Shown piece after piece: positions 6,956-53,699 of a DNA stretch of 64,000 nucleotides. Source of the DNA: Haplodiscus bocki (lineage: Eukaryota); the NCBI GenBank assembly GCA_965655095.1, contig OZ296649.1, forward strand, positions 806,001-870,000, read 5' to 3'. Under the pieces are notes generated by a model that was not told where the DNA came from, searched no databases, and saw only the letters and a program-made list of their open reading frames with translations. Position 1 is the first letter of the stretch. Each line of letters starts with the position of its first letter. Position numbers and translations under genes: made by a program.

Positions 6956-6957
6956 TC

Positions 6958-7955: not shown

Positions 7956-7959
7956 AAGT

Positions 7960-8928: not shown

Positions 8929-8999
8929 TTTAGTACCAACAAACGTTCAAATTGAAGCAACTTGACTGTAATTATGTAAAAAAATTGTTGGTTAAAAGT

Positions 9000-11600: not shown

Positions 11601-11689
11601 TTAGCTAGGGATCCAATAATCCCAATCAGCAAGAGACTATGGATATGCGGGTTGAATTACTTTCAAGTGTAGGCGCACAGAAAACAAAA

Positions 11690-12810
11690 TGGAGTAGTAG
11701 AAGAGTGAGCTCCATTTTTGTGTTCAGAGCCACAGTCATCGCTCGAAAATTAGAGTAAGGATAAAGCTGACTAGCATCAATTTCAACACTTGTTTCGCAC
11801 AAGTTGGTTGAATCACGAAAATGTGTCTCCTTCATAATAGCTTTTGTTGAGAATACAATGGATGGTCCTCCAATCACGTCCCGTGTACTTGCTCAAAGGA
11901 ATCCTTGTCGCCCGCTGGGAAGGGATAAAACTTTGCAGAAGTTGACTTGTAAAGACAAAAAATTGCAAGAACTGGCAAAATGCATCGAAATTTTTAATTG
12001 TTGAGTCCTTCAAAGCGGTGAAAATCAACAATTTTTTGCGTAACTTCTAACGCTGGAACAATCCTCAAGATAATATGCCAGCGGAGAAAGTCTTCGAACG
12101 TACACATTTCTTCTTGATCACACACCTTACCTTGAGCAGGTGTTGAAAAATTCCTTGTCCAGTTGAAGGTGAATGATTCAATTTAAATTTCGATGATTCT
12201 TCTTTAGATGTCGTACCGCCATTTTTCAAGCCTTCAAAGTCTGAATCATCATTTAGAAGGGGATTATTGTCGCGCAGTTTGCCAAGGATGGCATCATAAG
12301 GAGGAAAATGGAAGAAGCGCGATTTTTGCTTTATCGAACCTTTCATATGGAAAAACACTTTCCGCCTTTGACGTCTTGTAGGCTTTCAGGAAAAATTCAG
12401 CAATCTTGGCTGCTCGGAGGAAGTTCAATTTATAATTAAACTCAACGTCTTCAAAGTTGAAACATACAAATTGATTAGCCTTCTGGTAACTTTTGGTTCA
12501 ATCTCTCGTACATTAACATGGAGAAGCAGCAAAAAACACTTCATTGTGATATTGTCCTGTTTTGCGATGTTAAAGCCAAACACTGGAAGAACATCGCGAA
12601 ATCTTTCCCAGACATTCTGCAAGTCAAGAGTTTGTTTCTTTTGTGTCTGTGAAAATTGCGTCACTGCATCTTGCTCTTCTTTTTCTATACACTTTTTTCA
12701 AATTCTGAAAAGGTTCGTTGCAACCAAAATAAAGATTGCGATCGGAGAAGATTTTGATTATGTTTACTCTTTGGACTTGTTTCAAGCTGAAAAAACTTAT
12801 TTTTCATGAC
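11690..12810 (-). pseudogene. pPolB copy A, exonuclease to motif A fragment
   Basis: ORFs give DVLPVFGFNIAKQD (ExoII-like FNxxxYD), FPPYDAILGKLRDNNPL, and GGPSIVF...IDASQLYPYS (motif A DxxSLYP). Confidence 0.9.
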
Positions 12811-12824
12811 GAGAGTCAGCTGAG

Positions 12825-13228
12825 GTGACGGAGGTTCAAAGAACCTAATGTATTAGGATAAGCTATAGCGATTCAACTGGAGCCGATAGCTGAGAAAGAC
12901 TTTTGGCCCTAGCTGACAATTTTTGGGTGGTGTCACACTCGATTCTGATTGCTTGACGAAAAATTTACAATTTTCGTGGTCCATTCTGATTAGCCGCTGA
13001 CGTTTTTTGACGACGATAAAGTGTTAAGATAGCGTATACCTCGACATTGTAAGAAACGCGATATAGTTCGGGAGCTCATTAAGTGAGGTTGCGCTCGACT
13101 CTTTTTTGAAAAAGGCAAACGTTCAACAACGTTTTGAGACAGGGTATAGTTGTTCAAAGTGCAAAGACAAGGTGTAGTGACGCAATGTCTTAAAATGGGG
13201 TCTGGTTCGACAATGTATTAACACAGGG
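12825..13228 (+). repeat. Conserved head of satellite sub-array A
   Basis: Close paralog at 23830-24209; contains ACTCGATTCTGATTG (12937-12951), also present at 23919, 46098 (one mismatch) and 50241. Confidence 0.85.
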
Positions 13229-16200
13229 TTTAGTTCGGCAATGTTTCGAGATAGGGCACAGATTGTCAAGGTACCAAAACATGGTATAATTAAGCAAAGT
13301 GTTAAAATGGGGCGTGTTTCGTCAATTTACTAAAACATGGTAAAGTTGGGCAATGGGTTAGCAGAGGGTATGACTGGTCAATGTTTTAATACAGTGTATA
13401 GTTCGCATTTGAATTGAGATAAGGAATATTCCGGCAATGTAAACGAAAAGGGTTCAGTTCAGCAGTTTATAAGATAGAGTTGAGTTCGACAAAAACATGA
13501 GATAGACTATGAATCATCATGTAACTCAGACAGGGTATAGTTGTGCACTGTACCGACACAATGTGTAGCGAGGCAATGTGTTAAGTTAGGTTGTAGTTCG
13601 GAATTCTATCAAGATAGGTTATAGTACGGCAATGTTTAAAACAGAATACAATTCGGCAAAGTTTTCAGATAGGATTAAATTCAGACTTCTATGACGATGG
13701 TGTGTAGTTCGATACTGTTTTAGGAGAGGGTAAATTTGGGCAATATTTCAAAATAGGGTATAATTCTACAATGTTTTGGGACAGGGTAAGTTTCGGAAAT
13801 GTATTCAGATCGTGCTGAATTTGACAATATACTGAATTATTCTATAGTTCAGCAATTTAATAAGAAACGATATAGTTTTGCAAAAGGTTGCGACAGGATA
13901 TAGTTCGGATTTGTATTAGGATAGGGTAAAGATCGGCAAAGTTTTATAATGTATACAGTTCGGCATTGTATTGAAATAGATTGTACTGCGGTATTGTATT
14001 AAAAAAACGGTTTAAATAGGCAATGTTTGAAGATAGAGTAGAATTCGGCAATGTTTTAAGGCAGGATTTAGTTCGGAAATGTATCAAGATAGGGATGAGT
14101 TTGTAATTATGAGCAGATATGCTATAGTTCAGCAAGGTACTAAGACGGAGTATAGTTGTGCAATATATTAGGATGAAGTATAGTTCGGAATTGTATTAGG
14201 ATGGGGTGTAGTTCGGCATTTTATTGAAATCGGGCACCGTTCGTCAATATACTAATACATGGTGAAATTAGGCAATGTGTTAGGAGGGATAAAGTTCCTC
14301 AATCTAAAAAAAGACGGTATAGTTCTCCAGTTTAATAAAATAGGGTTGAGTTAGACAATATTTTAAGATGGGGTGTAGTTCAGCAAGGTACTAAGACAAG
14401 GTAGAGTTGTGCAATGTTCAGAAACAAGATGACCAGGTAAAGCCAGGCAATGTGTTAAGTTAGGGTATGTTTCAGCAAAGTTTTAGGATAGCGTACATTT
14501 CGGAATCGTAATAAGATAGGGTATAATACGGCAAAGTTTATATACAGTGTAGAGTTCGGCAAGGTTTAAAGATAGGATGTATTTCAAAATTTGATCAAGA
14601 TATGTTGTGGTTCGACATTCCATTGGGACAGGATATAGTTAGCCATTATTTCAGATAAGGGTTTAATTCGGCATTAAATTAAGACAGGATATTTTTTCGG
14701 AAATTTATCGAGGACGTTTGAATTGGACACTAAACTAAGATTTGCTACAGTTCGGCAATGTACTAAGAGAGGGTATAATTTTGCAAATTGTTTAGGCCAG
14801 GGTTTAGTTCGGATTTGTATTATGATAGGGTAAAGTTCGGCGAAAATTTGTGATGGGAAAAAGTTCGGGATTGTAAAAAGATAGGGCATAATAGGCAAAG
14901 TGTTAAATCACGATTTAGTAAAGCAATGTTTCAAGATAGGATATAAGTCTGCAATGATTCAAGACAGGGTGCAGTTGGGAAATGTAATAAAATCGGGTTG
15001 AGTTTGACATTATCTTAAGATACGTTTTATATTTCAGCAATGTATTAAGACAGGGTAATGATGTTCAAGAATTTAAGACAGGTTATAGTTCGAAATTGTA
15101 ATAAGATAGGGGATAGTTCGGCCATGTATCAGGATGAAGCATTGTCCGTCAACCTACAAAGACGGCGATATAGATCGGCAGTGTTTTCAGATAAGGTATA
15201 GTTCGCATTTGCATTAAGATAGAGTAAATTTCGGCAAATTTTTACGATAAAAAATGAAGTTCGGAACGGCCTTGAGATAGGGTGTAGTTCGGCAACGTAT
15301 TAAGACGGGATTTATTTAGGCTATTTTGTAAGAAAGGGTATGTTTTACCATTGTTATAGGACAGAGTATAGTTTGCAAATATAATAGCATAGAGTTGAAT
15401 TTGACATTATATTAAAATATGCTATAGGTCAGCATTGTACCAAGAAAGAGCATGGTTGTACAAAGTTTTAGAATAAGGTACAGTTTGGATTTGTATTAAG
15501 ATAGGGTAAAGTTCGGCAAAGTATTAACTAGGGATGTAGTTCGGAATTGTGTTTAGATATGGTGGAGTTCGGCAATTTATTGAGAGGATGCAAAATTTGG
15601 CGATGTTTTAAAGTAGGGTATTGTTCGGCAATGTTTTGAGACAGGGTATTTCCTGGAAATGTATTAAGATTGGGCTGATTTTGACAATATACTAACTTAT
15701 CCTATAGTTCTTCAAAGTACTAAGACAGAATATAGTTTGGCAAAAGGTTACGTCGGGGTATAGTTCGGATTTGTTTTAAGAGAGGGCAATGTTCGGCAAA
15801 AATTTAGGATTGGATACTGTTCAAAATTGTATAAGGATGCGGCATAGCTCGTCAATGTACTAAAACATGGTATAGTTTAGCAAAGTGTTAAGATGGGGCG
15901 TGTTTCGTCAATTTACTAAAACATGGTAAAGTTGGGCAATGGGTTAGCAGAGGGTATGAATGGTCAATGTTTTAATATGGGGTATAGTTCGCAATTGAAT
16001 TGAGGTAAGGTATATTCCGGCAATGTAAACGAGAAGGGTTCAGTTCAGCAGTTTATAAGATAGGGTTGAGTTCGACAAAAACATGAGATAGACTATGAAT
16101 CATCATGTTACTCAGACAGGGTATAGTTGTGCACTGTACCGACACAATGTATAGCGAGGCAATGTGTTAAGTTAGGTTGCAGTTCGGAATTCTATCAAGA

Positions 16201-19200
16201 TAGGGTATAGTACGGCAATGTTTAAAACAGAATACAATTCGGCAAAGTTTTCAGATAGGATTAAATTCAGACTTCTATGACGATGGTGTGTAGTTCGGTA
16301 CTGTTTTAGGAGAGGGTAAAGTTGGGCAATATTTCAAAATAGGGTATAATTCTACAATATTTTGGGACAGGGTAAGTTTCGGAAATGTATTCAGATCGTG
16401 CTGAATTTGACAATATACTGAATTATTCTATAGTTCAGCAATTTAATAAGAAACGATATAGTTTTGCAAAAGGTTGCGACAGGATATAGTTCGGATTTGT
16501 ATTAGGATAGGGTAAAGATCGGCAAAGTTTTATAATGTATACAGTTCGGCATTGTATTGAAATAGATTGTACTGCGGTATTGTATTAAAAAAACGGTTTA
16601 AATAGGCAATGTTTGAAGATAGAGTAGAATTCGGCAATGTTTTAAGGCAGGATTTAGTTCGGAAATGTATCAAGATAGGGATGAGTTTGTAATTATGAGC
16701 AGATATGCTATAGTTCAGCAAGGTACTAAGACGGAGTATAGTTGTGCAATATATTAGGATGAAGTATAGTTCGGAATTGTATTAGGATGGGGTGTAGTTC
16801 GGCATTTTATTGAAATCGGGCACCGTTCGTCAATATACTAATACATGGTGAAATTAGGCAATGTGTTAGGAGGGATAAAGTTCCTCAATCTAAAAAAAGA
16901 CGGTATAGTTCTCCAGTTTAATAAAATAGGGTTGAGTTAGACAATATTTTAAGATGGGGTGTAGTTCAGCAAGGTACTAAGACAAGGTAGAGTTGTGCAA
17001 TGTTCAGAAACAAGATGACCAGGTAAAGCCAGGCAATGTGTTAAGTTAGGGTATGTTTCAGCAAAGTTTTAGGATAGCGTACATTTCGGAATCGTAATAA
17101 GATAGGGTATAATACGGCAAAGTTTATATACAGTGTAGAGTTCGGCAAGGTTTAAAGATAGGATGTATTTCAAAATTTGATCAAGATATGTTGTGGTTCG
17201 ACATTCCATTGGGACAGGATATAGTTAGCCATTATTTCAGATAAGGGTTTAATTCGGCATTAAATTAAGACAGGATATTTTTTCGGAAATTTATCGAGGA
17301 CGTTTGAATTGGACACTAAACTAAGATTTGCTACAGTTCGGCAATGTACTAAGAGAGGGTATAATTTTGCAAATTGTTTAGGCCAGGGTTTAGTTCGGAT
17401 TTGTATTATGATAGGGTAAAGTTCGGCGAAAATTTGTGATGGGAAAAAGTTCGGGATTGTAAAAAGATAGGGCATAATAGGCAAAGTGTTAAATCACGAT
17501 TTAGTAAAGCAATGTTTCAAGATAGGATATAAGTCGGCAATGATTCAAGACAGGGTGCAGTTGGGAAATGTAATAAAATCGGGTTGAGTTTGACATTATC
17601 TTAAGATACGTTTTATATTTCAGCAATGTATTAAGACAGGGTAATGATGTTCAAGAATTTAAGACAGGTTATAGTTCGAAATTGTAATAAGATAGGGGAT
17701 AGTTCGGCCATGTATCAGGATGAAGCATTGTCCGTCAACCTACAAAGACGGCGATATAGATCGGCAGTGTTTTCAGATAAGGTATAGTTCGCATTTGCAT
17801 TAAGATAGAGTAAATTTCGGCAAATTTTTACGATAAAAAATGAAGTTCGGAACGGCCTTGAGATAGGGTGTAGTTCGGCAACGTATTAAGACGGGATTTA
17901 TTTAGGCTATTTTGTAAGAAAGGGTATGTTTTACCATTGTTATAGGACAGAGTATAGTTTGCAAATATAATAGCATAGAGTTGAATTTGACATTATATTA
18001 AAATATGCTATAGGTCAGCATTGTACCAAGAAAGAGCATGGTTGTACAAAGTTTTAGAATAAGGTACAGTTTGGATTTGTATTAAGATAGGGTAAAGTTC
18101 GGCAAAGTATTAACTAGGGATGTAGTTCGGAATTGTGTTTAGATATGGTGGAGTTCGGCAATTTATTGAGAGGATGCAAAATTTGGCGATGTTTTAAAGT
18201 AGGGTATTGTTCGGCAATGTTTTGAGACAGGGTATTTCCTGGAAATGTATTAAGATTGGGCTGATTTTGACAATATACTAACTTATCCTATAGTTCTTCA
18301 AAGTACTAAGACAGAATATAGTTTGGCAAAAGGTTACGTCGGGGTATAGTTCGGATTTGTTTTAAGAGAGGGCAATGTTCGGCAAAAATTTAGGATTGGA
18401 TACTGTTCAAAATTGTATAAGGATGCGGCATAGCTCGTCAATGTACTAAAACATGGTATAGTTTAGCAAAGTGTTAAGATGGGGCGTGTTTCGTCAATTT
18501 ACTAAAACATGGTAAAGTTGGGCAATGGGTTAGCAGAGGGTATGAATGGTCAATGTTTTAATATGGGGTATAGTTCGCAATTGAATTGAGGTAAGGTATA
18601 TTCCGGCAATGTAAACGAGAAGGGTTCAGTTCAGCAGTTTATAAGATAGGGTTGAGTTCGACAAAAACATGAGATAGACTATGAATCATCATGTTACTCA
18701 GACAGGGTATAGTTGTGCACTGTACCGACACAATGTATAGCGAGGCAATGTGTTAAGTTAGGTTGCAGTTCGGAATTCTATCAAGATAGGGTATAGTACG
18801 GCAATGTTTAAAACAGAATACAATTCGGCAAAGTTTTCAGATAGGATTAAATTCAGACTTCTATGACGATGGTGTGTAGTTCGGTACTGTTTTAGGAGAG
18901 GGTAAAGTTGGGCAATATTTCAAAATAGGGTATAATTCTACAATATTTTGGGACAGGGTAAGTTTCGGAAATGTATTCAGATCGTGCTGAATTTGACAAT
19001 ATACTGAATTATTCTATAGTTCAGCAATTTAATAAGAAACGATATAGTTTTGCAAAAGGTTGCGACAGGATATAGTTCGGATTTGTATTAGGATAGGGTA
19101 AAGATCGGCAAAGTTTTATAATGTATACAGTTCGGCATTGTATTGAAATAGATTGTACTGCGGTATTGTATTAAAAAAACGGTTTAAATAGGCAATGTTT

Positions 19201-22200
19201 GAAGATAGAGTAGAATTCGGCAATGTTTTAAGGCAGGATTTAGTTCGGAAATGTATCAAGATAGGGATGAGTTTGTAATTATGAGCAGATATGCTATAGT
19301 TCAGCAAGGTACTAAGACGGAGTATAGTTGTGCAATATATTAGGATGAAGTATAGTTCGGAATTGTATTAGGATGGGGTGTAGTTCGGCATTTTATTGAA
19401 ATCGGGCACCGTTCGTCAATATACTAATACATGGTGAAATTAGGCAATGTGTTAGGAGGGATAAAGTTCCTCAATCTAAAAAAAGACGGTATAGTTCTCC
19501 AGTTTAATAAAATAGGGTTGAGTTAGACAATATTTTAAGATGGGGTGTAGTTCAGCAAGGTACTAAGACAAGGTAGAGTTGTGCAATGTTCAGAAACAAG
19601 ATGACCAGGTAAAGCCAGGCAATGTGTTAAGTTAGGGTATGTTTCAGCAAAGTTTTAGGATAGCGTACATTTCGGAATCGTAATAAGATAGGGTATAATA
19701 CGGCAAAGTTTATATACAGTGTAGAGTTCGGCAAGGTTTAAAGATAGGATGTATTTCAAAATTTGATCAAGATATGTTGTGGTTCGACATTCCATTGGGA
19801 CAGGATATAGTTAGCCATTATTTCAGATAAGGGTTTAATTCGGCATTAAATTAAGACAGGATATTTTTTCGGAAATTTATCGAGGACGTTTGAATTGGAC
19901 ACTAAACTAAGATTTGCTACAGTTCGGCAATGTACTAAGACAGGGTATAATTTTGCAAATTGTTTAGGCCAGGGTTTAGTTCGGATTTGTATTATGATAG
20001 GGTAAAGTTCGGCGAAAATTTGTGATGGGAAAAAGTTCGGGATTGTAAAAAGATAGGGCATAATAGGCAAAGTGTTAAATCACGATTTAGTAAAGCAATG
20101 TTTCAAGATAGGATATAAGTCGGCAATGATTCAAGACAGGGTGCAGTTGGGAAATGTAATAAAATCGGGTTGAGTTTGACATTATCTTAAGATACGTTTT
20201 ATATTTCAGCAATGTATTAAGACAGGGTAATGATGTTCAAAAATTTAAGACAGGTTATAGTTCGAAATTGTAATAAGATAGGGGATAGTTCGGCCATGTA
20301 TCAGGATGAAGCATTGTCCGTCAACCTACAAAGACGGCGATATAGATCGGCAGTGTTTTCAGATAAGGTATAGTTCGCATTTGCATTAAGATAGAGTAAA
20401 TTTCGGCAAATTTTTACGATAAAAAATGAAGTTCGGAACGGCCTTGAGATAGGGTGTAGTTCGGCAACGTATTAAGACGGGATTTATTTAGGCTATTTTG
20501 TAAGAAAGGGTATGTTTTACCATTGTTATAGGACAGAGTATAGTTTGCAAATATAATAGCATAGAGTTGAATTTGACATTATATTAAAATATGCTATAGG
20601 TCAGCATTGTACCAAGAAAGAGCATGGTTGTACAAAGTTTTAGAATAAGGTACAGTTTGGATTTGTATTAAGATAGGGTAAAGTTCGGCAAAGTATTAAC
20701 TAGGGATGTAGTTCGGAATTGTGTTTAGATATGGTGGAGTTCGGCAATTTATTGAGAGGATGCAAAATTTGGCGATGTTTTAAAGTAGGGTATTGTTCGG
20801 CAATGTTTTGAGACAGGGTATTTCCTGGAAATGTATTAAGATTGGGCTGATTTTGACAATATACTAACTTATCCTATAGTTCTTCAAAGTACTAAGACAG
20901 AATATAGTTTGGCAAAAGGTTACGTCGGGGTATAGTTCGGATTTGTTTTAAGAGAGGGCAATGTTCGGCAAAAATTTAGGATTGGATACTGTTCAAAATT
21001 GTATAAGGATGCGGCATAGCTCGTCAATGTACTAAAACATGGTATAGTTTAGCAAAGTGTTAAGATGGGGCGTGTTTCGTCAATTTACTAAAACATGGTA
21101 AAGTTGGGCAATGGGTTAGCAGAGGGTATGAATGGTCAATGTTTTAATATGGGGTATAGTTCGCAATTGAATTGAGGTAAGGTATATTCCGGCAATGTAA
21201 ACGAGAAGGGTTCAGTTCAGCAGTTTATAAGATAGGGTTGAGTTCGACAAAAACATGAGATAGACTATGAATCATCATGTTACTCAGACAGGGTATAGTT
21301 GTGCACTGTACCGACACAATGTATAGCGAGGCAATGTGTTAAGTTAGGTTGCAGTTCGGAATTCTATCAAGATAGGGTATAGTACGGCAATGTTTAAAAC
21401 AGAATACAATTCGGCAAAGTTTTCAGATAGGATTAAATTCAGACTTCTATGACGATGGTGTGTAGTTCGGTACTGTTTTAGGAGAGGGTAAAGTTGGGCA
21501 ATATTTCAAAATAGGGTATAATTCTACAATATTTTGGGACAGGGTAAGTTTCGGAAATGTATTCAGATCGTGCTGAATTTGACAATATACTGAATTATTC
21601 TATAGTTCAGCAATTTAATAAGAAACGATATAGTTTTGCAAAAGGTTGCGACAGGATATAGTTCGGATTTGTATTAGGATAGGGTAAAGATCGGCAAAGT
21701 TTTATAATGTATACAGTTCGGCATTGTATTGAAATAGCTTGTACTCCGGTATTGTATGAAAAAACGGTTTAAATAGGCAATGTTTCAAGATAGAGTAAAA
21801 TTCGGCAATGTTTTAATGCAGGGTTTAGTTCGGAAATGTATCAAGATAGGGATGAGTTTGTAATTATGAGCAGATATGCTATAGTTCAACAAGGTACTAA
21901 GACAGAGATAGTTGTGCAATATATTAGGATGAAGTGTAGTTCGGAATTGTATTAACATGGGGTGTAGTTCGGGTTTTTATTAAAATCGGGCACCGTTCGT
22001 CAATAAACTAATACATGGTAAATTTAGGCAATGTGCTAGGAGAGATAAAGTTCCTCAACTTAATAAAAAAGGGTATAGTTCTCCAGTTTAATAAAATAGG
22101 TTTGAGTTAGACAATATTTTAAGATGGGGTGTAGCTCAGCAAGATACTAAGACAAAGTAGAGTTGTGCAATGTTCAAAGACAAGATGACCAGGTAAAGCC

Positions 22201-23830
22201 AGGCAATGTGTTAAGTTAGGGTATGTTTCAGCAAAGTTTTAGGATAGCGTACATTTCGGAATCGTAATAAGATAGGGTATAGTACGGCAAAGTTTAAATA
22301 CAGTGTAAAGTTCGGCAAGGTTTAAAGATAGGATGTAGTTCAAAATTTGATCAAGATATGTTGTAGTTCGGCATTGCATTGGGACAGGATATAGTTAGCC
22401 ATGATTCCAGATGAGTGTTTACTTCGGCATTAAATTGAGACAGGGTATTTTTCGGAAATTTATTGAGGAGGGTTGAGTTGGACACTAAACTAAGATTTGC
22501 TACAGTTCGGCAACGTACTAAGACAGGGTAAAATTTTGCAATTTTTCTAGGACAGGGTTTAATTCGGATTTGTATTATGATAGGGTAAAGTTCGGCAAAA
22601 ATTTGTGATGGGAGAAAGTTCGGGAATGTAAAAAGATAGGGCATAGTTAGGCAAAGTGTTAAATCACGATTCAGTAAAGCAATGTTCGAAGATAGGATAC
22701 AAATCGGCAATGTTTCAAGACAGGGTGCAGTTCGGAATTTTATTAAGATCGGGTTGAGTTTGACATTATCTTAAGATACGTTTTAGATTTCAGCATTGTA
22801 CTAAGACAGGTTAATGATGTGCAAGAATTTGAGACAGGTTATAGTTCGGAATTATAATAAGATAGGGGATAGTTCGACCATGTATCAGGATGAAGCATTG
22901 TCCGTCAATGTACAAAGACGGCAATATAGATCGGCAGTGTTTTCAGATAAGGTATAGTTCGCATTTGCATTAAGATAGAGTAAAGTTCGGCAAATTTTTA
23001 CGTTTTTTAAAATGGGGCATATTTGATCAGTATACTGAGACTTAGTAAAGTTAGGCATTGTGTTAGGAGACGGTATAGCTCGTCAGTGATACAAGAAAGG
23101 TTATGGTTCGGAATATATAGAGATAGGGTGCAGTTCGGCAATGTAATAAAAAAAGTTTTAGTTCGGCAGGTTGTTACGATAGGGTTGAAAGCGACAAAAA
23201 TTCAAAACCAGCTATATTTTAGCAATGTAAGAAGGCAAGGTACACTTGTGCAATGTACTAAGTCAATTTATAGCGAAACAAGGTGTCAAGTTGCGTTATA
23301 GTTCGGCAAAGTTTTAGCATAGGGTTTAGTTGGGAACTCTATCAAAATAGTGTATAGTACTAAGACGGGATAAATTTGTGCAATTTACCAAGACAATGTA
23401 TAGCGAGGCAATGTGTTTAGTTAGGGTACAGTTCAGCTAAATTTTGGGATAGGGTATAGGTCAGAAATCTTTGAAGATAAAGTATAGTCGGAAATGTATA
23501 AAGATAGGTTATAGTTCAGAAATTTTTCAAGATAAGATACATTTCGGATTTCGATTAGGACAAGGTGTGATTTGGCATTGTATTGGGAAAAAATTCAGCT
23601 AGGCAATGTTTCGAAAAAAGGTAATATTTTGCAATGTTTTGGGACAGTGTAAACTTTGGAATTGTGCAAAGATGGGGTCGAAACAGGCAATATAGTAAGA
23701 TATGCTATATTTCAGATATGTACTAAGACAGGGTGTAATTTTGCAAAGTGTTAGGAAAGTGTTTAGTTCGGACTTGTGTTAAGATAGGGTAAAGAGCGGC
23801 AAGGTCTTAGCATTGCAATTATTTCAGAAA
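13020..23830 (+). repeat. 28-bp satellite sub-array A with 2586-bp higher-order repeat (~3.8 copies, 13270-23001)
   Basis: Identical spurious ORFs recur at 13944/16530/19116 and 14674/17260/19846 (spacing 2586); individual monomers are divergent while HOR copies are nearly identical. Confidence 0.97.
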
Positions 23831-40200: not shown

Positions 40201-40309
40201 GGGATATTGTAGGCTGTCAATATTCATGGTGATATTGTTGAGAGCGTTTTGAAAAGTACTTGTGGCGGAGATAGGTAAACATTAAACCTTAGCAGAGGTT
40301 ACAAACTTT

Positions 40310-40670
40310 AAATCAAAATCAGACACATTGTAGAAAAATCAATTCCAAAACTGACACTTTGTAGAAAACTTTTATTCAAAATGTGACTTTGTAGCAAAAC
40401 ATCAGTTCAAAAACTGAAATTCCCTGAGAAACATGTGCTTCAGAATCAAGTTTGTTGAACGACATGAAAATGAAAAACTTGTTGTTTTTACGGATTACAT
40501 TGAGTCAAAAACATGATTTTTAAGAAGTAAGTTTTACACTCGAATTCTGATTTCCAAAGGATACTTCTTCTTTAAAATCTGATCAAAAAATAATTCGAAT
40601 TCTCACAGGTCAAAAAACAATCAAAATCTGACGATTTGTAAAAATTTTGATCCTAAATCTGTGTTTCAAA
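40310..40670 (+). repeat. Degenerate ~30-bp tandem repeat (ATTCAAAATCTGACACGTTGTAAAA-like)
   Basis: Recurrent caaaatc(a/t)gac units; unrelated to the 28-bp satellite; reverse-oriented array at 47750-48012. Confidence 0.7.
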
Positions 40671-43100: not shown

Positions 43101-43222
43101 ATTAGACGAGATTATTTAAATCAATCTCTTGTAAGCTTGGTCAAGTGACTGGACTATTCTTTTGCCTTTACGTAAAACCCTTTCTGCCGACCACTTTCAA
43201 TTTTGTCGAAATTTGAAGCAGT

Positions 43223-43680
43223 ATGTTTTTCATTGTACCAGATATTGATTTTGCAGATACGAAAGTTTTCAAGAAGTTGAGATTTTCCAAGAATGGGAAT
43301 GTTCAGGGATGCTCATCTTGTCCTTCGAACAAATACAAACCCATGAACACAAGCATTTTTGGGGTCAAAAAATATGTGCGGAAGTTTCTGGAAAAGTGGA
43401 AGTTTGGATGACAGTTAGTTTCCAAACATTTCGCCGAGAGATGTAGAGAAAGAACGTTTTCAAGAGAAATTTTAAAACAGCAGGATTCTTAGAAAAATAA
43501 TCGCCAAAAACTTTGGAAACTTGGATGATCAAGGCTGCCCCAAATTTCGAGATCTTGTTGATTCTGAAGCAGAAGAAGAAATTTGGGTTTGCTCGAGTTG
43601 CCTTTCAGAAACAAGACCACAATTCACTGTGCAGAGTGCAAGGCAAATTTGCCTGAAAACTAGACAAGGCAGCCTCTAAA
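43223..43680 (+). pseudogene. DEDD/DnaQ-like exonuclease-fold gene relic of a Maverick
   Basis: FIVPDIDFADTKVFKKL (hhhDxE...KEL-like), later NLDDQGCPK and a Cys/His tail WVCSSCL..K.TIHCA. Confidence 0.5.
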
Positions 43681-44052
43681 GTTGTAAAAATTGTATTGTG
43701 GAGTGTATTGTCATAATCTGCGTAATTAGGTCTTGTAAAAAGATTCAATCATTTTTTTAGAAAATCGTTTTTGAGTGATTGAGCGAACAAACTAGATGAC
43801 TGATGCAGATAGCAATAATAATCTGGGCAAGATTGATTTCGACGGCAACAATCAAGAGCAAAAATTGTGGTCCTCTACAGGATGAACCTGTTCCAGATCC
43901 CTGATAGTCTTTTTCTCCCCACTTTTTGTCAATCTGTTGTTTGTCTCTGCTTGCCTCTGAAGAATTCATCTTTCAAAAAAATGTGACCAAACAATTGTCT
44001 GGGTGAGCAACTTTTTTAGTGTAGCAAGATGAGCTGAACTCTCACCAAAACT

Positions 44053-44760
44053 ATGAAAAAAATTGTTGCTTCAAAAAAGAGCGTTTTTGTACTTTTGGTT
44101 CATCCCTCTGACACAAGAAAGTCACGTAATTTTTTTACATTGAGTCAAAGTTAGAACCTCTCAACAAAGAATTGGTGAAAACGCTTTTCTATCAACACTC
44201 CTAGCCACTTTACGATGCTTTGCAAAGAGAGAGTTAAAATCTTGAGCGTGCATAGGATGTAAACTTCGAATTTATATATTGGTTGAAAAACAGCGGTACA
44301 AAGTACTTGTTATTCTTCAATAAACTATCTTAGGATCTTTGCAATCCGAAAGCCTTTTTGATATTGCAACCGCTGATTGGCATAGTGGTTTTGAGTACTA
44401 TTTACTTTAAGCCCAACTTGTTTCTTCAAAGCAAACTTGGGCGAGAGTTCGAGCTCTCAAATACGTATATTTTTCTCTCAAAACTCACTTTGAGGTGATG
44501 CAAATCAGTGCGCCTAGCGCACAAATGGGTCCCGGATCAGGGCTTCTTCACCGGTATTGAGACGCAACATCCGTTCTCTACGGTCATTTATTGATAGAAA
44601 AGTTGCTATGAACAGAAGATCGATTTAGTTACTGTAAAAAAAACACTCGATCCGTTGCTCAAAGTTTATATCCCCGACAAGTTGAAACAAATTAAGTCTT
44701 TGGGCGATGAACAAACAAAACATCAATTTTCTCCAAGTGATCCCATCAGTTTTTGTCCAC
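44053..44760 (+). pseudogene. A32-like (FtsK/HerA) packaging ATPase of a Maverick, degenerate
   Basis: MKKIVASKKSVFVLLVHPSDTRKS (decayed Walker A GPSxTGKS), TKYLLFFN (Walker B hhhhDD), DIATADWHSG (A32 GRH motif), YGHLLI. Confidence 0.8.
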
Positions 44761-44989
44761 TCAAAAAGTTTTTTTTTCCTTCAGCCTTGCCGAACATAGT
44801 TTAACAGGTAAATCTGCAATTGCTTAGTAACTCTTCTAAAAAAACACCTGTAAAGCGTAAAAAGAAGTCACTTGAGATAGTTGCAGAAACATAGTTGATT
44901 TTTATTTTAAAAAACAATCACTTGGCAGCAATTAGAGGTTGTGGAATCTAAGGAAAGGTGACTGCTGAGGCAAATCTTGACTTATAACA

Positions 44990-46018
44990 GTGTTGAGCTG
45001 TTCCCAGTCTTAATACACTGCTGATTAATACCTTGTTTCATTAGATTGCTGAGATGTTCCCAATCTTGAAAAAACGCTGACCTATACCCTTTATTGTTAC
45101 TTTGCTGTGCTTTTCCCAATCCTAAAACTTTGCTGATGTATACAATCTCTCATTACATTGCTGAGAAATTCCTAATCTTAAAACATTGCTGATGCATACC
45201 TTGTCTTATTATATTGCTGAGACGTTCCCGATCGTGGAAAAAAGCTGACTTATACCCTTTCTTCTTTTATTGCTGTGCTTTTCCCAATCTTAAAACTTTG
45301 CTGATGTATACACTGTCCCATTACATTGCTGGGAAATTCGCAATCTTGAAACATTGCTGATGCATATCCTGTCTTATTATATTGCTGAGATGTTCCCAAC
45401 CTTGAAACAATGCTGACGTATACCTTGAGATTTTACATTGCTGAACTGTTTCTAATCTTATAACATCCCTGAGGCTTATCTTGTTTTGTTACATTGCTGA
45501 GACGTTCCCGATCGTGGAAAAAAGCTGACTTATACCCTTTCTTCTTTTATTGCTGTGCTTTTCCCAATCTTAAAACTTTGCTGATGTATACACTGTCCCA
45601 TTACATTGCTGGGAAATTCGCAATCTTGAAACATTGCTGATGCATATCCTGTCTTATTATATTGCTGAGATGTTCCCAACCTTGAAACAATGCTGACGTA
45701 TACCTTGAGATTTTACATTGCTGAACTGTTTCTAATCTTATAACATCCCTGAGGCTTATCTTGTCTTGTTACATTGCTGAGCTGTTCCACTTCTTTTAAC
45801 ATTGCTGAGGCATATCTTATTTTACTACACTGCTGAGGAGTTCCCAATCTTGAAGATTGCTCACGTATACATTGTGATATTACATGGCAGAGCTATACCC
45901 TATATTAGCACATTGACGGACTATGGTTTATGTTAATACATTGCTGACGGTTTCCACGAAACTATGTCGGCAGCACATCAGAATCATTTATTTTGTCACC
46001 CAAAATGCCCGAGAGCTG
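44990..46018 (-). repeat. Satellite element, minus strand: CAGCAATG-variant 28-bp array (56-bp dimer, 280-bp duplication) plus head
   Basis: acattgctga recurs at ~28-bp spacing; gacgttcccgatcgtgg at 45221 and 45501; the head 45910-46018 is the reverse complement of 46069-46177. Confidence 0.9.
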
Positions 46019-46068
46019 CCGACTTGGTATAACCTAATATAGAACATAGGAACCTACACCTTATCCTT

Positions 46069-47215
46069 CAGCTCTGGGGTCTTTTAGGTGATGTAATACT
46101 CGATTATGATTGGCTGCCGACAACGTTTCGTGAAAACCGACAGCAAGACATTAAGATAAACCATAGTTCGACAATGTACTGAGATGGGTTAAAGCTCAGC
46201 AATGCAATAGCACAAAGTATACGTCAGCAATGTTTTGATATTGGATATAGCTCAGCAGTGTAATGAGATAAGATACGCCCGAGGAAAGTTATAAGATTAG
46301 AAAGAGCTCAGTGATGTAAAATAACAAAGTATACGTCAGCAATGTTTCGAGTTTGGGAATAGCACAGCAACGTAACCAGAAAGGGTATACGTCAGCATTG
46401 TTTCAAGATTGGGAAAATCTCAGCATTATTATGGGACTGAGTATACATCAGCAATGTTTAAAGTTTGGGATTTTCTCAGCAATGCAATGAGACAGGGAAT
46501 ACATCAGCAAAGTTTTAGGATTGGGAATAGCACAGCAATGTAACAAGAAAGGCTATGCATCAGCATTGTTTCAAGTTTGGGGACATATCAGCAATGCAAT
46601 AAGTCAAGGTATACACCAGCAGTGTTTTAGGACTGGCAGTAGCACAGCAATGTCAAAAGTCAAGTTTTGCCGCAGGAAATATTTGAGATTGGGAACAACT
46701 CAACAATATAATAAGAAAGAGTAAGCATCAGCAATGTTTTGAGAGCGGCAAATCTCAGCAATGTAATAGCATGGATTCACCTCAACATTGTTATAAGATT
46801 AGGAGCATCCCTACAATGCAATAAGACCGGGTCTAACTCAACAATGTGTTATATTTGGGTATGGCTCATCAATGCAATAAAATTGGGAATTACTCAGCTA
46901 CGTAAAATGATTGGTGTTACTTAGGCAATGTGTTAATGTTGGGTATAGCTCAACAGAGTGTTAGGGCAGCGTATACATCAGCAAAGAAATAAGAAAGCGT
47001 ACACTCCCCACCAATGTCCTTAGACAGGGTATTTTTCCGCAAAAAAAATGTGTTGTATGGATTTGGGTTCCCGAGTCTTTGACCCTGGATAAGTTTAGGC
47101 TTTCGGCAAAAACCGAGTGCATAGAGTCCTTAAGACCGTCACAGTTTTATGATATGCAATCCGAGCTAATTTTGTTCGATAATGTATTATGATAGTGTGT
47201 ACAGGCAGACCTTGC
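46069..47215 (+). mobile_element. Satellite element, plus strand: head + CAGCAATG-variant array + tail
   Basis: Head motif at 46098, array ~46150-47030, tail (gcgtacactccccaccaat...atttgggt...aatgtattatgatag) homologous to 50720-50945. Confidence 0.85.
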
Positions 47216-47749
47216 AGACATTGAAAAACGGTGAAATTGCCTGGAAGCTGAGAAGGATGTACACTTACGAATCAAGTATGCTTTAATTCTGCAATATTTG
47301 AAGATGAGTTCAGAGTTTGGTAAAATATGGGACCACCTAAGGTATGCTCTGAGACACACATGTGTTGGAAATTGATTTTCGATTTAGTATTGTCAGTTTT
47401 GATGAGTTTCAAGAATGTGATGGGTAGCGTCCCGCAACCAATGTTGGGTAAATGCTGTGTATTTGTCAGCTTCATTCCATTGCTCTTTTTCTTGTTACTC
47501 ACACAAAACATTGGAGAAAACGGATGGAGTTCTGACTAAAGTGCGTTTTCTTTTCCTTTCGTTCAGGTTCAATTTGAGAAACACTGCTGATCTGCTAGAT
47601 TTTATGCTCCAGAGAGTTCTGTCCATAACTTCTGTGAAAATGGTGTGTTGTGATAATACTATTCCTCACACATTGAGACACATTTCAAATAAATTGAAAT
47701 TTACGTTGACAGAAGATATCATCATTCAGTCAGATCCTGGAAATTACGT

Positions 47750-48012
47750 GAAAATCAGATTTCGAAGAAAAAATTTGAAAACTTGCCAGGTGTTCAATCA
47801 AATTTTTTAACGCGTCGCTATTTTGAAAAAAAATTTTACAAAGCTTCAGATTTTGAATTAAAAAGAAAATATAACGGGTCATGTTTTGAGTTTGAAAATG
47901 CAACGCTTCAATTTTTAAGTTTAAAAAACTAGAACGTGTCAGATTTTAGATCAACTTTTTAAACACGCGTCAGATTTTGAAATGAATATTTTACAACGTG
48001 TCAGATTTTGAG
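47750..48012 (-). repeat. ~30-bp tandem repeat (ACAACGTGTCAGATTTTGAA on the plus strand)
   Basis: Reverse complement of the unit at 40310-40670. Confidence 0.75.
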
Positions 48013-48619
48013 TGTACTTTTTTTGCAGCTCGCCAGGTTTTCATGTGTTCCTCGAAACAGGGCCGTTTCGGTAATGTTTCAATGTCTAGTGTGGGTTCGG
48101 TTAAACAATTTATTCTGTTAGGATAGGTTTTTTGTACCTCAAGTGTGATCAACGTAACGAGGCATATTAAGACATCCAATCCGATCCGAGTTTGTTCATC
48201 AATATACTCAGATAGGGAATGGTATTTAACAAGGTTGTACAGGAGACTATGAGGTTTGCAACGTACAGAGCTAAGTAGTCTGAATTCAATGACTTATTTG
48301 TGATAACGTCATGTCTTCTGATAAGGCAGAGGACCGACCTGATCAAGCATTGAAGTAGGTTATAAAGAGTGGTGGGTGAGAAGGGTGTGAACCTATGTAT
48401 TACGCTAGGATGAACAGCTGCAATGTACTAAGATAGGTTGCGGTTTCGGCTGCCTAAGGGAGTGTTACCTTACAAAGAAGTTGAAGATGAACTTTTACTT
48501 CTCACTCAAAGTCAACAAAGAAAGGGAACAAAAAATAAATTTTCGAAAAAAAACAACAAACATTGCTCCAGCAAACAAAAAAATCAAACACCTGAAGCAA
48601 ATAGCTACACTTAAATACA

Positions 48620-49400
48620 ATTACAGTTAATCACAAACGGCGGAATTCCATCCGTTGCTCCGTTGTACCAGAGATTTACTCAACTCTTCAACTGTAGCAA
48701 CTGTTTCATTCACTCGTCCGTCTGGTTGGTAATTTCTCTGAAAGAATGCAAAGCTGACGCAAAATCCCTTCTTTTTACTGTCCATCGTTCGCAATGAAGA
48801 AAACATTTGATTAGAGTCTGTTCTAGGTTCGTGAGTTGATGTTTGAGGGTACTGATTGGACATAGAGCATCTCTCATTAGTGTGTTTGGGTGACAAAAGA
48901 GCTGCTGAAACCATGGCCCATAAGGTATATGTGTTCAGAAAGATATTAGAGTTATACTGCTCATCAACAAACTAATAATGTTGATCGTTACTGTGAATGC
49001 ATTTGGGTTTTAATCACAATTTGGAAAGGTAATTCCGTTCTCGGTTGATCTGTCTGATTTTGACAGGAGTTTCAGGGTAGAAGGTAGTAGCACAAACAAA
49101 ATCTACATAGTCCACGATATTCTCCTCATCAAGGAAGTGCACAATGTCATCGAAAGAAACGGTCCTTTTGAAAATCTGGCCACAATTTGACAAAAGATCT
49201 TTTTCTGGACGCAAAAAAAGAATGAATTGCAAGCTCTGTAGGATCACAAGGAGAGACTTGGGTTTTATTGTAGCTGCCCCTGGATTCCTGCAAAAGGCAA
49301 AAATAATCAATTTCGACAACGTCGAGCACTAAATTCTGATCGTAAGCAGAAATTGATGAGAAATTTCAGCAGTGGTTGAATACATTGGTAGCTGGAAGAA
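48620..49400 (-). pseudogene. Degenerate non-LTR retrotransposon reverse transcriptase fragment
   Basis: ORF 49014-49319 KPKSLLVILQSL...CGQIF...VDYVDF..TFY..YLSKL resembles the RPISLL...QxGF...DxxYxDFxKAFD...LLxKL order of LINE RTs. Confidence 0.45.
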
Positions 49401-50234
49401 GCGTTATTGAGAACGGTTCTTAAAGAATGAATTTTTAGAGTAGCAAGTTGCTGATTTTATAAGATTTTAACCGGTTCATACATGCTTTATAATGATAACT
49501 TTTCCTTTTTGGTCGAAGCTACAATGACTCCCATATATGGGAGATGTTTCCTTTTTTTGGGACTTGGTGCAAATTTTAACACTAATTTGTTTCTCAGTAA
49601 TTTGTTCAGCGTAATTTTTCCAGACAACCTGTTGTCTTATCAGGGCAGTTTGTTCCTCTTAATTTGTTCCTCTTTTCTCAGACACGCTGTCTGGTGATAT
49701 ATGTCCCCGTGATAAATTTTTCCCAGACAGCCTGTCACCATAAAAGGGGAACTTGTTCCACTTGAGTTGTTTTCACAGAAAAGCATTTTTATCCAAATAA
49801 CTAGTTTTTAAAAGTATAAAGTTGATTTTTAGGACAAAAGAAATTAATTGACAGCTCCTCTTATGGTTAGTCTGTCCTTTTTTTGCACATTCCATATCTG
49901 GTACAAAGTAATGATTATCACTCGCTACATATTTTCGCCGGAAGCGGGTTCCATTCACAGGTCATGTCCAGTTTATTTGAATAAAAAAACGATGTAGTCA
50001 CTCCACGGTTTTGTCACTGTATGTTGGTCGTTCCTCGCTTCCAACCACTTCCGGAACCATCTTTTTTTCACACTTGATACGCGTGAATGAGCTCGTCGAA
50101 ACTTTTGCATGATGGCCTAGAGGATTTCCTTTTATGTCAATGGTTTTAACTTTGTGCTCATATAAGTACATGTAGGTCTTAGGCTGTCTGCTCGTGATTT
50201 ATTCAGATTTGATTTTGATTGCGTTATCGCGTGA

Positions 50235-50948
50235 CTAAATACTCGATTCTGATTGCTGTCGACAACTTTTCGGGTAAGTTGACAGCAGTGTTTTAACATC
50301 GGCCATAGTTCGACAATGTACCAAGATAGGGTATGGCCCAGTAAAGTATTAATGTTTGGTATACCTCAGCAATGTGTTAGGATTGGGCATAACTCAGCAA
50401 TAATTTAGTATTTGGGCGTTGCTTAGCAATGTAATGAAACAGGGTGTACCTCATCAATGTGTTAGGATTGGGCATAACTCAACAATGCATTAGTCTTTGG
50501 GAAATGGTTAGCATTGTAATAAGATAAAGTACACCTGTACAATGTGTTAGGATTGGGCATAGCTCAGCAATGTATTAGTTTTTGGCAATTGCTTAGTAAT
50601 GTAATAAGATAGGGTATACCTCAACAATGCGCTCGGATTGGGCATAGCTCAGCAATGTAAAAATGTTGGGTTGAGCTCAACAGTAGAATAAAACAGGCTG
50701 TAGTTCAGCAAAGTAAAAAGATAGCGTACACTACCCACCAATTTATTGAGACAGGTTATACTTCGGTAATGCATTATTATATGGTTTGAATTTGGGTGTC
50801 CTAGTCAATGAATTGAGAATTAAAAAGGGTTGCGTTTTTGGCACAAACCAGAAACTGAGTGTATGAGTCCGTCAGTGTTTTAGGAGTTGCGATCCGAACC
50901 GATTTTGTCCCACAATGTAATATGATAGCGTCTAGAGCCAGTCGCCTC
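50235..50948 (+). mobile_element. Satellite element: head + 85-bp trimer array + tail
   Basis: Head motif at 50241; aatg(t/c)g..ggattgggcata at 50371, 50456, 50541 and 50626; tail homologous to 46995-47210 and ending in GTCGCCT. Confidence 0.85.
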
Positions 50949-51149
50949 AACTTTAACTTTCACCTACCTTCCTCCATAAGATGTAGGCATCATTTAGCAT
51001 TCAAATTAAGAGAAGCAGTTAGACACAAGAGATAATCGTTTACCTATGAGCATAATGCTACCAATTTTGAAAAATGGTTGATATGATTCCATGTTTTTTG
51101 ATTTTCAAAAAAAGACTCCTGTCTCAAACATTTTACATGCTTGCTTGTC

Positions 51150-51950
51150 CTCAAACTCCATGATTTGAGTAGACAGACCCAAAGGAATCCTGAAAACACA
51201 GCTTGTTTATCAAATTTTACAAATTTGTTGTGGTATCTTACAGTAATGCAGACTCCGTTGCTGAAAATTCAAACCCCTTTTTGTTTTTTGAGTGACACTT
51301 CGACGCAAAAGTACTGCTTAATGGTTATTTTGTAACGCAAAACTATGTTTTTGTAGTTTTTCAATCAGAAGGAACTAAAAACAATTACCTTGACAACTTC
51401 ATCAGACATGTTAAAGAGACAATAAGTATAAAAATCCTTAAGCAATTTAAAAAAAAATTTAAACTACGAGGCATATATGTCTGGCTTTCTGATTGAGATC
51501 TCTAACATTCACACAATCACTTTTGGTTAACAAAGACATTTTTTGTCTCACAAATCACCTGCAGGTTACATTTGGGATGAAATGTCTTTGATTGTTTACT
51601 GAAATTATGAGGACCAGGATCGACAATGATAAACATCGGAACAAGAGTTGCGACGGTGACCATTGTTTTTTCTACTTCAGGAAATGCGGCTTCGATTGAA
51701 AGTAAAATGTTGCAGTACACAACAATATTTATAAAACTCCATCAATGTACATTGAGCGAATCAAAAACCCAAGTTTTCATTTTGTCAAACGTCCTTGCTG
51801 GTCTCTCAATACATTGCGTGGATCAGAAACAGCACTCAAACCCGTACTTTTTAACAAAATCTGTAATTATTGGTTTTGTTGACATAGCAAATGAGTACAT
51901 GCCGGCGTACAATATAGGCGCAGGCTTGCAAAATCATCTTTTTTAGAGTT
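51150..51950 (-). pseudogene. Probable PIF/Harbinger (DDE_Tnp_4) transposase relic
   Basis: AFPEV..VATLVPMFIIVDPG...CNLQVICETKNVF resembles GFPxVxGxIDxTHxxI...SxNxQxxCD; downstream PQQICKI..SCVF resembles the ACxxLHN region. Confidence 0.5.
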
Positions 51951-52273
51951 TGCATCAATGTAAATGTGCAGATTACAAGTTTTTCTTGTTAGCATTTGTT
52001 CTATCTAACTAAATTTTTTGAATTAAAATCAATCTTTTAACATAGCATTAGGTCGAAACAGTTTCAACAAGGGTAACAGAAAGTGATTGACAACTCTTGC
52101 GGTTTTTCTGTTTTTTTGTGGTTATTCTTTCCTTTTATGGTCTTTCCATAAAATGTTTTTTGTGAGAGACAACACAGGATACAGATTTTTCGCCATTTTT
52201 CTTTTTGTCGTTGCCTCATTCGAGTTGCTACAATCTTTTCGTTTGTTGCGATTTTCCTGTAAAATTACTGTTC

Positions 52274-53035
52274 CACAGGCGTCAGAGAGCTATCTTCTAT
52301 CCTACTACAGTGCGGAACTAAACCCTATGTTATTACAATTTCGAACTATACCCTAGCTTAATACATTACGGAACTTTACCCCATCTTAATAGAATACCGA
52401 ACTATACACGATCCTAATACATTACCGAACTAAACCCCATCTTAATACATTTTCGGAGTACATCCTATTTTATTTCATTACCGAACTATACACTATCTCA
52501 ATACAATACAGGACTATACCCTACCTTATTACTTTGCCGAACTCTACAATACCTTCATACATTAGCGATCCATACCCTATCTTAAAAGACTGAGCAGAAC
52601 TTTACGCCTTCTTAAAACATTACCGAAACATACCCTATCTTTATACATTATCGAACTAAACCCTATATTGATACATTACCGAGCTCTAGCGAATATTAAT
52701 ACATTACCGATCTATACCTATGTCAATACATTACCGAACTAAACCATATCTTATTACATTTTCGAACTACACCCTATCTTATTACATTACCGAACTATAC
52801 CATATCATAGTACAATAGGGAACTATATCCTACCTTATTAAATTGCCGAACTCTACCCTATCTTCATACATTAGCGAACTATACCCTATCTTAATACATT
52901 ACCGAACTAAACCATATCTTTATACGTTACCGAACTACACCATATCTTATTACATTACAAAATTATACCCTATCTTTAAACATTGTCGAATCATACCTTA
53001 GTTTAGTACATTGCCGAAGTATCCTTCCACATTGC
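52274..53035 (-). mobile_element. Satellite element, minus strand, with CACAGGCGT terminus and 28-bp array (plus-strand unit TACATTACCGAACTATACCCTATCTTAA)
   Basis: CACAGGCGT at 52274 leads directly into ~25 monomers. Confidence 0.85.
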
Positions 53036-53053
53036 ATAAGTCAAAACAGTATC

Positions 53054-53582
53054 CACAGGCGTAAAAATTAACCGCAGGCATCTTAATTAGTCCTCCCAGT
53101 AATATTTATGCGCGCGGCCTCTGGAAAAAAATCAATAAAACTTCTCGAAGAAGTCACGCGGTGCCGAAAATTGTCGCACAGTGCCGAAAATATCATATCC
53201 CGTACCTTAATACCTTGCGAGACCATTCAATAGCCTTATACATTACCATAAACACCATCCTAATACATTGCCGTCTTATCATAATACATTGAAGAACCTA
53301 TACCCTATTTTATTACATCTCCGAAACTATACCCTATCTCAATACATTATTACCCTATCCCATATCTTAATACATTGCCGAAACTATGCACTATCTTGAT
53401 ACATTGACGAAACTATACCCTATCTCAATACATTGCCGAAACTATACCCTATCTTAATACATTGCCGAAACTATATCCTATCTTAATACATGGCCATGAC
53501 CCTTTGACCCTTCTCGGCCCTGGGCACGAGTCGGCTGCTATAGCCTATCTTAATACATGGAGGGTATACCGCCCCCCGTCTG
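53054..53582 (-). mobile_element. Compact, apparently complete satellite element (~530 bp) with 29-bp monomers
   Basis: Starts CACAGGCGT, ends CCGCCCCCCGTCTG; ATC on both flanks (53051-53053, 53583-53585); monomers ACATTGCCGAAACTATACCCTATCTTAAT; right end homologous to the heads at 1338 and 12827. Confidence 0.7.
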
Positions 53583-53699
53583 ATCAGTTCCACCATCTAC
53601 TACTGCAGAGAGTTAACAGTGAAAAAACTTAGAAAATGAACTAATTGCTGTCCAGAACTGATCAAACAGTTAACTAATCACTGCTTGTGGGAAAACCAG

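Follow-up and report, generated by a model that had tools for sequence, protein, structure and literature searches.

A palindrome of satellite repeats in the genome of Haplodiscus bocki probably represents the hinge of a mobile element that is palindromic, dispersed and bounded by Maverick-type ends. The palindrome lies in a stretch of 64,000 nucleotides (GenBank assembly GCA_965655095.1, contig OZ296649.1, positions 806,001 to 870,000 of the forward strand; hereafter the window), which was analyzed as a whole, is 37% G+C and contains zero Ns. It is formed by the two inner arrays and the two heads of one old element copy, which extends from 44963 to 53604 and consists of a 1.05-kb stump of the left arm and a full right arm of 7.6 kb. 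An earlier note on this DNA, made from the letters alone, had described two satellite elements joined head to head over ~2 kb (44990-47215). Two array-bearing units are indeed arranged head to head, with their arrays running outward, as Tandem Repeats Finder (TRF) and inverted alignment agree; they are not, however, two independent satellite elements that make up a 2-kb object, but the hinge of a family of ~15-kb palindromic mobile elements.

The palindrome and its dispersed relatives

An inverted-repeat search found arms at 45853-46018 and 46069-46234 (166 nt, 78% complementary, with 50 nt between them), and the shorter arms proposed in the earlier note (45910-46018 and 46069-46177, with the same 50-nt spacer) lie inside these and are real. 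Gapped local alignment of 45085-46018 with the reverse complement of 46069-47001 matched 684 of 918 aligned positions (74.5%), and many register-shifted inverted pairings between the arrays, 300-570 nt long and 71-76% alike, were returned by a repeat search. TRF placed 28/56-bp arrays of opposite orientation at 44976-45875 and 46193-46769, with higher-order periods that differ between the left (280 bp) and the right (168 bp) side. As for the extent of ~2 kb, an imperfect palindrome is present from 44963 to 47001, whereas positions 47001-47215 already belong to the non-satellite tail of the element.

When the window's own genome (1.5 Gb) was searched with positions 45900-46190, at least 25 other loci matched both heads and the spacer at 75-80%, and many loci matched a single head only, at 85-88%. 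At the two-headed loci, homology continues for ~7.6 kb per arm. The same spacer junction therefore recurs across the genome, and the spacer is conserved across 20 aligned hinges, which speaks against the local end-to-end junction that the earlier note had considered. An accident confined to this locus, in which two independent satellite-carrying elements were inserted or joined head to head or in which a local inverted duplication arose, would fit the modest likeness of the window arms (75-78%) and their differing array periods, and one copy described below (contig M) shows that inverted duplication including flanking DNA is possible in this family. Such an accident is nevertheless very improbable, since the identical junction and spacer are found at these dispersed loci, since the different flanks of the loci argue against segmental duplicates of one locus, and since a graded series of hinges leads back to a perfect palindrome.

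Complete copies of the element are palindromes of 13-16 kb in which two mirror-image arms of ~7.6 kb stand head to head. From the outside to the hinge, each arm carries a terminus, AGTAGTAG, subterminal 28/29-bp repeats, unique DNA, a second array, an open reading frame (ORF) of 222 aa, 31-bp repeats, a 0.68-kb unique piece, the inner 28/56-bp array and a 175-bp head; in the right arm of the window, the terminus piece measures 109 nt and the outer unique DNA 1.3 kb. The two arms are 94% identical over 6.2 kb in copy A (C4), 92.5% identical over 4.8 kb in copy B (C1:32,596,000-32,625,999) and 95-97% identical in contig M, a contig from ENA (ctg82319 of ERZ26859043, L056/L057) with a complete element of 15,149 bp at 5333-20481. 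Matches to a probe from the outer arm lie on seven chromosomes, where they form inverted pairs with spacings of 7.8-16 kb. The site at which copy B is inserted is itself a tandem repeat with a period of ~1.72 kb (B positions 4490-8053 and 21915-23781).

The structure of the window copy is also supported by Logan contigs assembled from short reads. Contigs of 328-334 nt span 45795-46122 or 45795-46128 with 0 differences and at the depth of unique flank (i.e., single-copy), and a 653-nt contig spans the left truncation point, with 44600-45069 matched with 0 differences. These contigs come from 4 runs on 2 samples of 1 study, and the best-matching sample may be the one that was assembled, so that this support is only partly independent. 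The case that the earlier note had named as fatal to its proposal, namely a unique junction with arms from different subfamilies or a junction without read support, does not apply here, given the recurrence at 25 or more loci and the short-read contigs that cross the junction. An assembly error, such as a chimeric long read that folds back or a wrong join made at an inverted repeat, could be suspected because related loci are hard to assemble, a 200-N scaffold gap being located within ~0-850 bp of the hinge at 12 of the 31 hinge loci (L002-L032). A fold-back would, however, yield near-identical arms, and likeness between the window arms is just 75-78%, in sequence free of Ns; with both segments crossed by reads from the 4 runs at single-copy depth, an assembly artefact can be given next to no weight.

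Termini, coding content and a probable link to Mavericks

The ends of complete copies read 5'-AGTAGTAG...CTACTACT-3' and are inverted repeats of each other, with arms that are 92-96% identical over 4.8-7 kb, far beyond the usual few hundred bp. In 13 arms (the one in the window and 12 others), homology stops sharply at ...CTACTACT and unrelated flanks lie beyond. A 21-nt degenerate pattern of the terminus had 5,116 matches in the genome, as compared to 49 for the reversed control, and many of these matches form +/- pairs that are 14-20 kb apart. The count would correspond to ~2,500 pairs of termini, and several pairs of ~18 kb lie on C1 (for example, 1,419,591/1,437,862). Three complete end pairs are flanked by duplications of the target site (TSDs) that are 6 bp long, namely CACATG/CACATG (6/6), CATGCC/CATGCA (5/6) and ATCAAC/ATCATC (4/6), so that 15 of 18 positions match versus ~4-5 by chance. 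The same features, namely the end motif 5'-(AGT)2//(ACT)2-3' along with perfect 6-bp TSDs, served to identify vertebrate Mavericks in the study of Barreat and Katzourakis (PMC8097293). The motif (AG)3...(CT)3 is an alternative form of Maverick ends.

A classical Foldback-type transposon without relation to Mavericks, moved by a cut-and-paste transposase from the P or the Mutator superfamily, would show the same architecture of very long modular inverted arms with tandem repeats and a tiny or absent middle. Among Foldback-type transposons, TSDs are 9 bp long in FB and 7 bp long in Galileo. Many rearranged copies, with arrays growing into satellites, also recall Tetris, which has TSDs of 8-10 bp, arms of up to 1.7 kb and arm repeats that became satellite DNA (PMC4079207). 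The TSDs found here are 6 bp rather than 7-10 bp, however, the ends AGTAGT...ACTACT are the motif reported for Mavericks (PMC8097293), and no transposase fragment was found in the arms, which makes a Foldback-type transposon of this kind unlikely. A satellite carrier of the Helentron/HINE type was ruled out, as such an element is expected to have neither inverted repeats at its ends nor TSDs, but asymmetric ends with a 3' hairpin. A Penelope-like element with inverted truncated copies is spoken against by the Rfam search of the whole window, which found nothing, including no hammerhead.

The 222-aa ORF is conserved, with one per arm, and is encoded on the minus strand at the position that corresponds to 48615-49257 of the window, directed toward the hinge. 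The frame is broken in the window and open elsewhere, namely in copy A (both arms) and in copy B and contig M (at least one arm of each); the ratio of nonsynonymous to synonymous substitution rates (dN/dS) between copies A and B is 0.42. More than 1,000 near-identical proteins are on record, clustering at 50% identity gives 475 clusters, among them full-length relatives that are 35-50% identical, and the genome holds 6,259 first-look candidates, with most of the 150 scored being open. The arms contain no ORFs longer than 234 aa, and no polymerase, integrase or capsid gene was found in the copies read; a Pfam search of the arm ORFs gave no significant match and one sub-threshold hit to Ion_trans (E 0.008). 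A metagenome scan with the 222-aa ORF returned a single 1-kb contig (JGI Ga0126343_10328511, L058; 81% identity), and the family or a relative of it is therefore present in an environmental or host-associated sample.

The genome in which these elements reside is rich in protein-primed polymerase B (pPolB), with 98 scored matches to PF03175, all above the family cut-off, and ~11,000 first-look candidates. At C4:88368991-88382563, two intact 1208-aa polymerase B frames (at C4:88368991 and C4:88381124) are found in convergent inverted orientation, 12 kb apart, and a copy of the 222-aa ORF (C4:88375254-88375919) sits between them; this locus could represent a palindromic element that still carries its polymerase. 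The strict definition of a Polinton calls for both pPolB and a retroviral-type integrase, and by this definition the family described here is a non-autonomous dependant at most. It is therefore filed as an element of the Maverick type that is palindromic and non-autonomous. Within the part of the literature that was searched, no report on a palindromic Maverick derivative was found.

Decay of the hinge and state of the window copy

Comparison of hinges across the genome revealed several states. In L027 (C9:37.42 Mb), the two heads meet as a perfect palindrome centred on GTTGAC-N-GTCAAC, and a degenerate 27-nt pattern detected perfect hinges at 19 loci, with 0 control matches; several hinge variants have changed symmetrically on both sides at once. 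Relative to the perfect form in L027, the window-type hinge, which a pattern search matched at 13 loci, is missing 53 bp; the lost stretch begins directly behind the GTCGAC of one arm and includes the GTCAAC that forms the other head's tip. Judging from these aligned sequences, the 50-bp spacer is the residue of a 53-bp deletion between near-identical 6-bp direct repeats and not a separate insert. This deletion removed the center of symmetry and left 45 nt of one head unpaired. Smaller central deletions were found in L005, L011, L013, L015 and L017. In still other copies the deletions are one-sided; they begin 3-6 nt beyond the center and take away one arm as far as the array, or as far as positions equivalent to 47131, 47246, 47272 or 49957. 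Long palindromes in general, in other organisms, are known to decay in this way, and the graded series of hinges reads most simply as the decay of an originally perfect long palindrome.

The earlier note had also suggested that the palindrome could form a cruciform or a long hairpin RNA. As single-stranded DNA, the center of the palindrome has a computed folding energy of -100.6 kcal/mol, as compared to -36.3 +/- 4.1 kcal/mol for shuffled sequences (z = -15.7; 0 of 100 shuffles reached this value). With heads that are predicted to be 78% paired around a 50-nt loop, this copy is a poor candidate for a cruciform. A read-through transcript of 45300-46790 would fold into a single long imperfect hairpin at a computed -719 kcal/mol, which would fit retention of the hinge by the host as a source of small interfering or Piwi-interacting RNA (siRNA/piRNA) against the element or the satellite. 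Rfam found nothing in the window, however, and the hinge in the window is the most decayed among 18 two-headed hinges, and nothing holds back the divergence of its arms, which speaks against selection for pairing at this locus; retention of the hinge for this purpose thus appears highly unlikely.

The identity between the heads of the window copy (0.775) is the lowest among the 18 two-headed copies. Taking into consideration this low identity and a 280-bp duplication that is private to the left array, the window copy has therefore been left alone for a long time, and it represents an old and truncated relic that is probably inert. Its left arm ends at ~44963, and the sequence further left is outside the family; an inverted copy of 47000-53600 was looked for left of the hinge in the window and none was found. 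The parts of the copy are listed in Table 1.

Table 1. Parts of the element copy in the window, from left to right
Feature	Position	Strand	Basis or remark
Left arm, inverted 28/56-bp tandem array, truncated on its outer side	44963-45852	-	TRF, inverted pairs, alignment
Young local 280-bp duplication in the left array, 95% identical, unmirrored in the right arm	45153-45788		TRF
Left ('short') head, non-satellite, reverse complement of 46069-46234	45853-46018	-	166 nt at 78%; alignment of 20 hinges
'Spacer'	46019-46068	+	Comparison with the perfect hinge of L027 and 13 other junctions
Fused GTCGAC/GTCAAC repeat within the spacer	46019-46023		
Terminal 45 nt of the right ('long') head, partner deleted	46024-46068		
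Part of the right head and first array units, pairing with the left head	46069-46234	+	
Right arm, inner 28/56-bp array	46190-47001	+	TRF; colinear with other copies
Right arm, unique 'tail1' (0.68 kb)	47000-47681	+	Alignment of most copies stops at 47681
31-bp tandem repeats, variable zone	47683-48041	+	TRF
Right arm, unique 'tail2'	47930-49940	+	79-84% identical to other copies
Remnant of the 222-aa ORF of the family, broken and directed toward the hinge	48615-49257	-	Intact in other copies
Second head-like piece, followed by 85/28-bp array	50231-50941	+	
Right arm, outer unique segment	50958-52290	+	
Subterminal 28/29-bp arrays, inverted relative to the inner array	52297-53495	-	TRF
Outer terminus, ending ...CTACTACT	53496-53604	+	Homology to every other copy halts exactly at 53604

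The window also contains a 20-kb satellite, located at 13-33 kb, whose unit is the subterminal 28/29-bp unit of the element (52297-53495). A left terminus of the Maverick type (AGTAGTAGAAGAGTGAGC...) is found at 11693, ~1.15 kb before this 28-bp satellite (region 11693-33484), and the unit and the orientation of the satellite match the subterminal repeats as read inward from such a terminus. The 20-kb satellite may therefore be an overgrown arm of another copy. That 11693 and 53604 are the two ends of one element was considered and rejected, as no TSD is shared between them.

Further repeats were observed to the left of the truncated arm. A run of 31-bp repeats at 40307-40417, in the opposite orientation and 5.7 kb left of the hinge, resembles the repeats at 47683-48041 of the right arm; it may be either a leftover of the left arm that was lost or a copy without relation to it. 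The 1.8-kb sequence at 43127-44931 recurs at 66% identity beside another hinge (L032:3368-5108, across an assembly gap) and is probably another dispersed repeat. A G+C-rich 38-bp tandem repeat at 2576-2730 (4 copies, 92% matches) is unrelated to the palindrome.

Proposed origin and comparison with known systems

Within copies, the two arms tend to resemble each other more than they resemble the arms of other copies. With a unique 0.43-kb probe, identity between the two arms of a copy was 0.84-1.00 (nine copies, three at 0.998 or above) versus a mean of 0.868 between arms of different copies, and the heads of the 18 two-headed copies had a mean identity of 0.894 within copies versus 0.84-0.865 between copies. 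The arms would therefore either be made identical at each copying or be converted afterwards. Re-copying of the arms from each other could occur by gene conversion or by a U-turn of the replication fork at the hinge, and a fork U-turn would account for both the concerted arms and the structure of contig M.

The founder of the family may have arisen from a Maverick genome, linear and protein-primed, of which one end was copied back onto itself through a hairpin-capped or snap-back intermediate. A snap-back dimer of this kind would have two good termini, which represent the same functional end twice, and could be replicated and inserted in trans by the polymerase and integrase of autonomous Mavericks; its arrays could expand into satellites, and its perfect hinge would be unstable and would break down by central deletions. 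By analogy with known systems, a snap-back origin, taken by itself, is plausible but falls somewhat short of an even chance. The foldback or hairpin transposition intermediate that the earlier note had envisaged thus pointed in the right direction, as the palindrome belongs to a family of palindromic mobile elements, while the snap-back intermediate itself is something that we infer. A more elaborate proposal is that the family is a self-perpetuating snap-back parasite of Mavericks, i.e., a dimer in which one genome end is mirrored and which has retained the signals for replication and integration together with a small gene of its own, present in ~1,000 or more copies, with arms that are re-copied, a perfect hinge that decays by central deletions, and putative terminal-protein- or integrase-binding 28-bp repeats that seed the 28-bp satellites of the genome; this proposal is tentative and, as a whole, rather doubtful.

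A number of points weigh against the interpretation of the family as a palindromic element with Maverick-type ends and against its proposed origin. The TSDs were identified at three end pairs, and one of these alone is perfect; the window copy is single-ended and is hence without a TSD of its own. In contig M, the inverted repeat (merged coordinates 4669-21148) continues for 665 bp outside each terminus (99.4% identity), and a TSD is absent. In this contig, the palindrome seems to have grown or been rebuilt at its site so as to take in flanking DNA, and simple insertion of a palindrome does not account for the case. The sole link to an autonomous, polymerase-bearing element is given by the coordinates on C4. 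In addition, the 222-aa ORF has neither a Pfam match nor a usable hit in the protein atlas, and its AlphaFold model is poor (mean predicted local distance difference test score, pLDDT, of 44). The snap-back origin is argued by analogy and not from an observed intermediate.

If the interpretation presented here is correct, a virus-like protein-primed transposon can yield palindromic dependants that outnumber it, and these dependants would evolve in the manner of large sex-chromosome palindromes, with arm-to-arm copying and central decay. Kilobase-scale satellite arrays in an animal genome would also be tied to the subterminal repeats of such an element. Should the family be a snap-back parasite, it would represent a genomic counterpart of defective-interfering viral genomes. 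The hinges also mark fragile places of the assembly, as indicated by the scaffold gaps at 12 of 31 loci; assembly contigs tend to break at the palindromes of this family.

Among known systems, Mavericks/Polintons share with this family the 5'-AGTAGT...ACTACT-3' ends and 6-bp TSDs (PMC8097293), as well as terminal inverted repeats and a host genome rich in pPolB. In contrast to Mavericks, the inverted repeat here extends over the entire element, as two arms of 7.6 kb that join at a hinge; polymerase, integrase and capsid genes are absent from the copies read, which have one 222-aa ORF per arm, and tandem arrays with units of 28, 31 and 85 bp fill the arms.

Foldback elements (FB, Galileo and Tetris of Drosophila, and TU of sea urchins) are similar in that their inverted arms are long and modular and contain tandem repeats, in that a middle domain is small or missing, and in that they are non-autonomous and highly rearranged, with arm repeats that amplify into satellite DNA (Tetris, PMC4079207). 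The present family differs from these elements by its 6-bp TSDs and its end motif, by arms that are at least 4 times longer (7.6 kb versus at most 1.7 kb in Tetris), and by its presumed mobilising machinery, which would be of the Maverick type and not P or Mutator-like (MULE).

Palindromic snap-back derivatives are formed by protein-primed linear replicons, examples being the incomplete genomes of adenovirus and, from the yeast killer plasmid pGKL1, deletion plasmids in hairpin or inverted-dimer form. As is proposed for the family described here, one genome end is mirrored in these derivatives, the same functional end is present at either terminus, and replication depends on a helper. Those derivatives, however, are extrachromosomal molecules from the laboratory or the virion, whereas the elements in H. 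bocki are integrated, are present in hundreds to thousands of copies and evolve as part of a genome.

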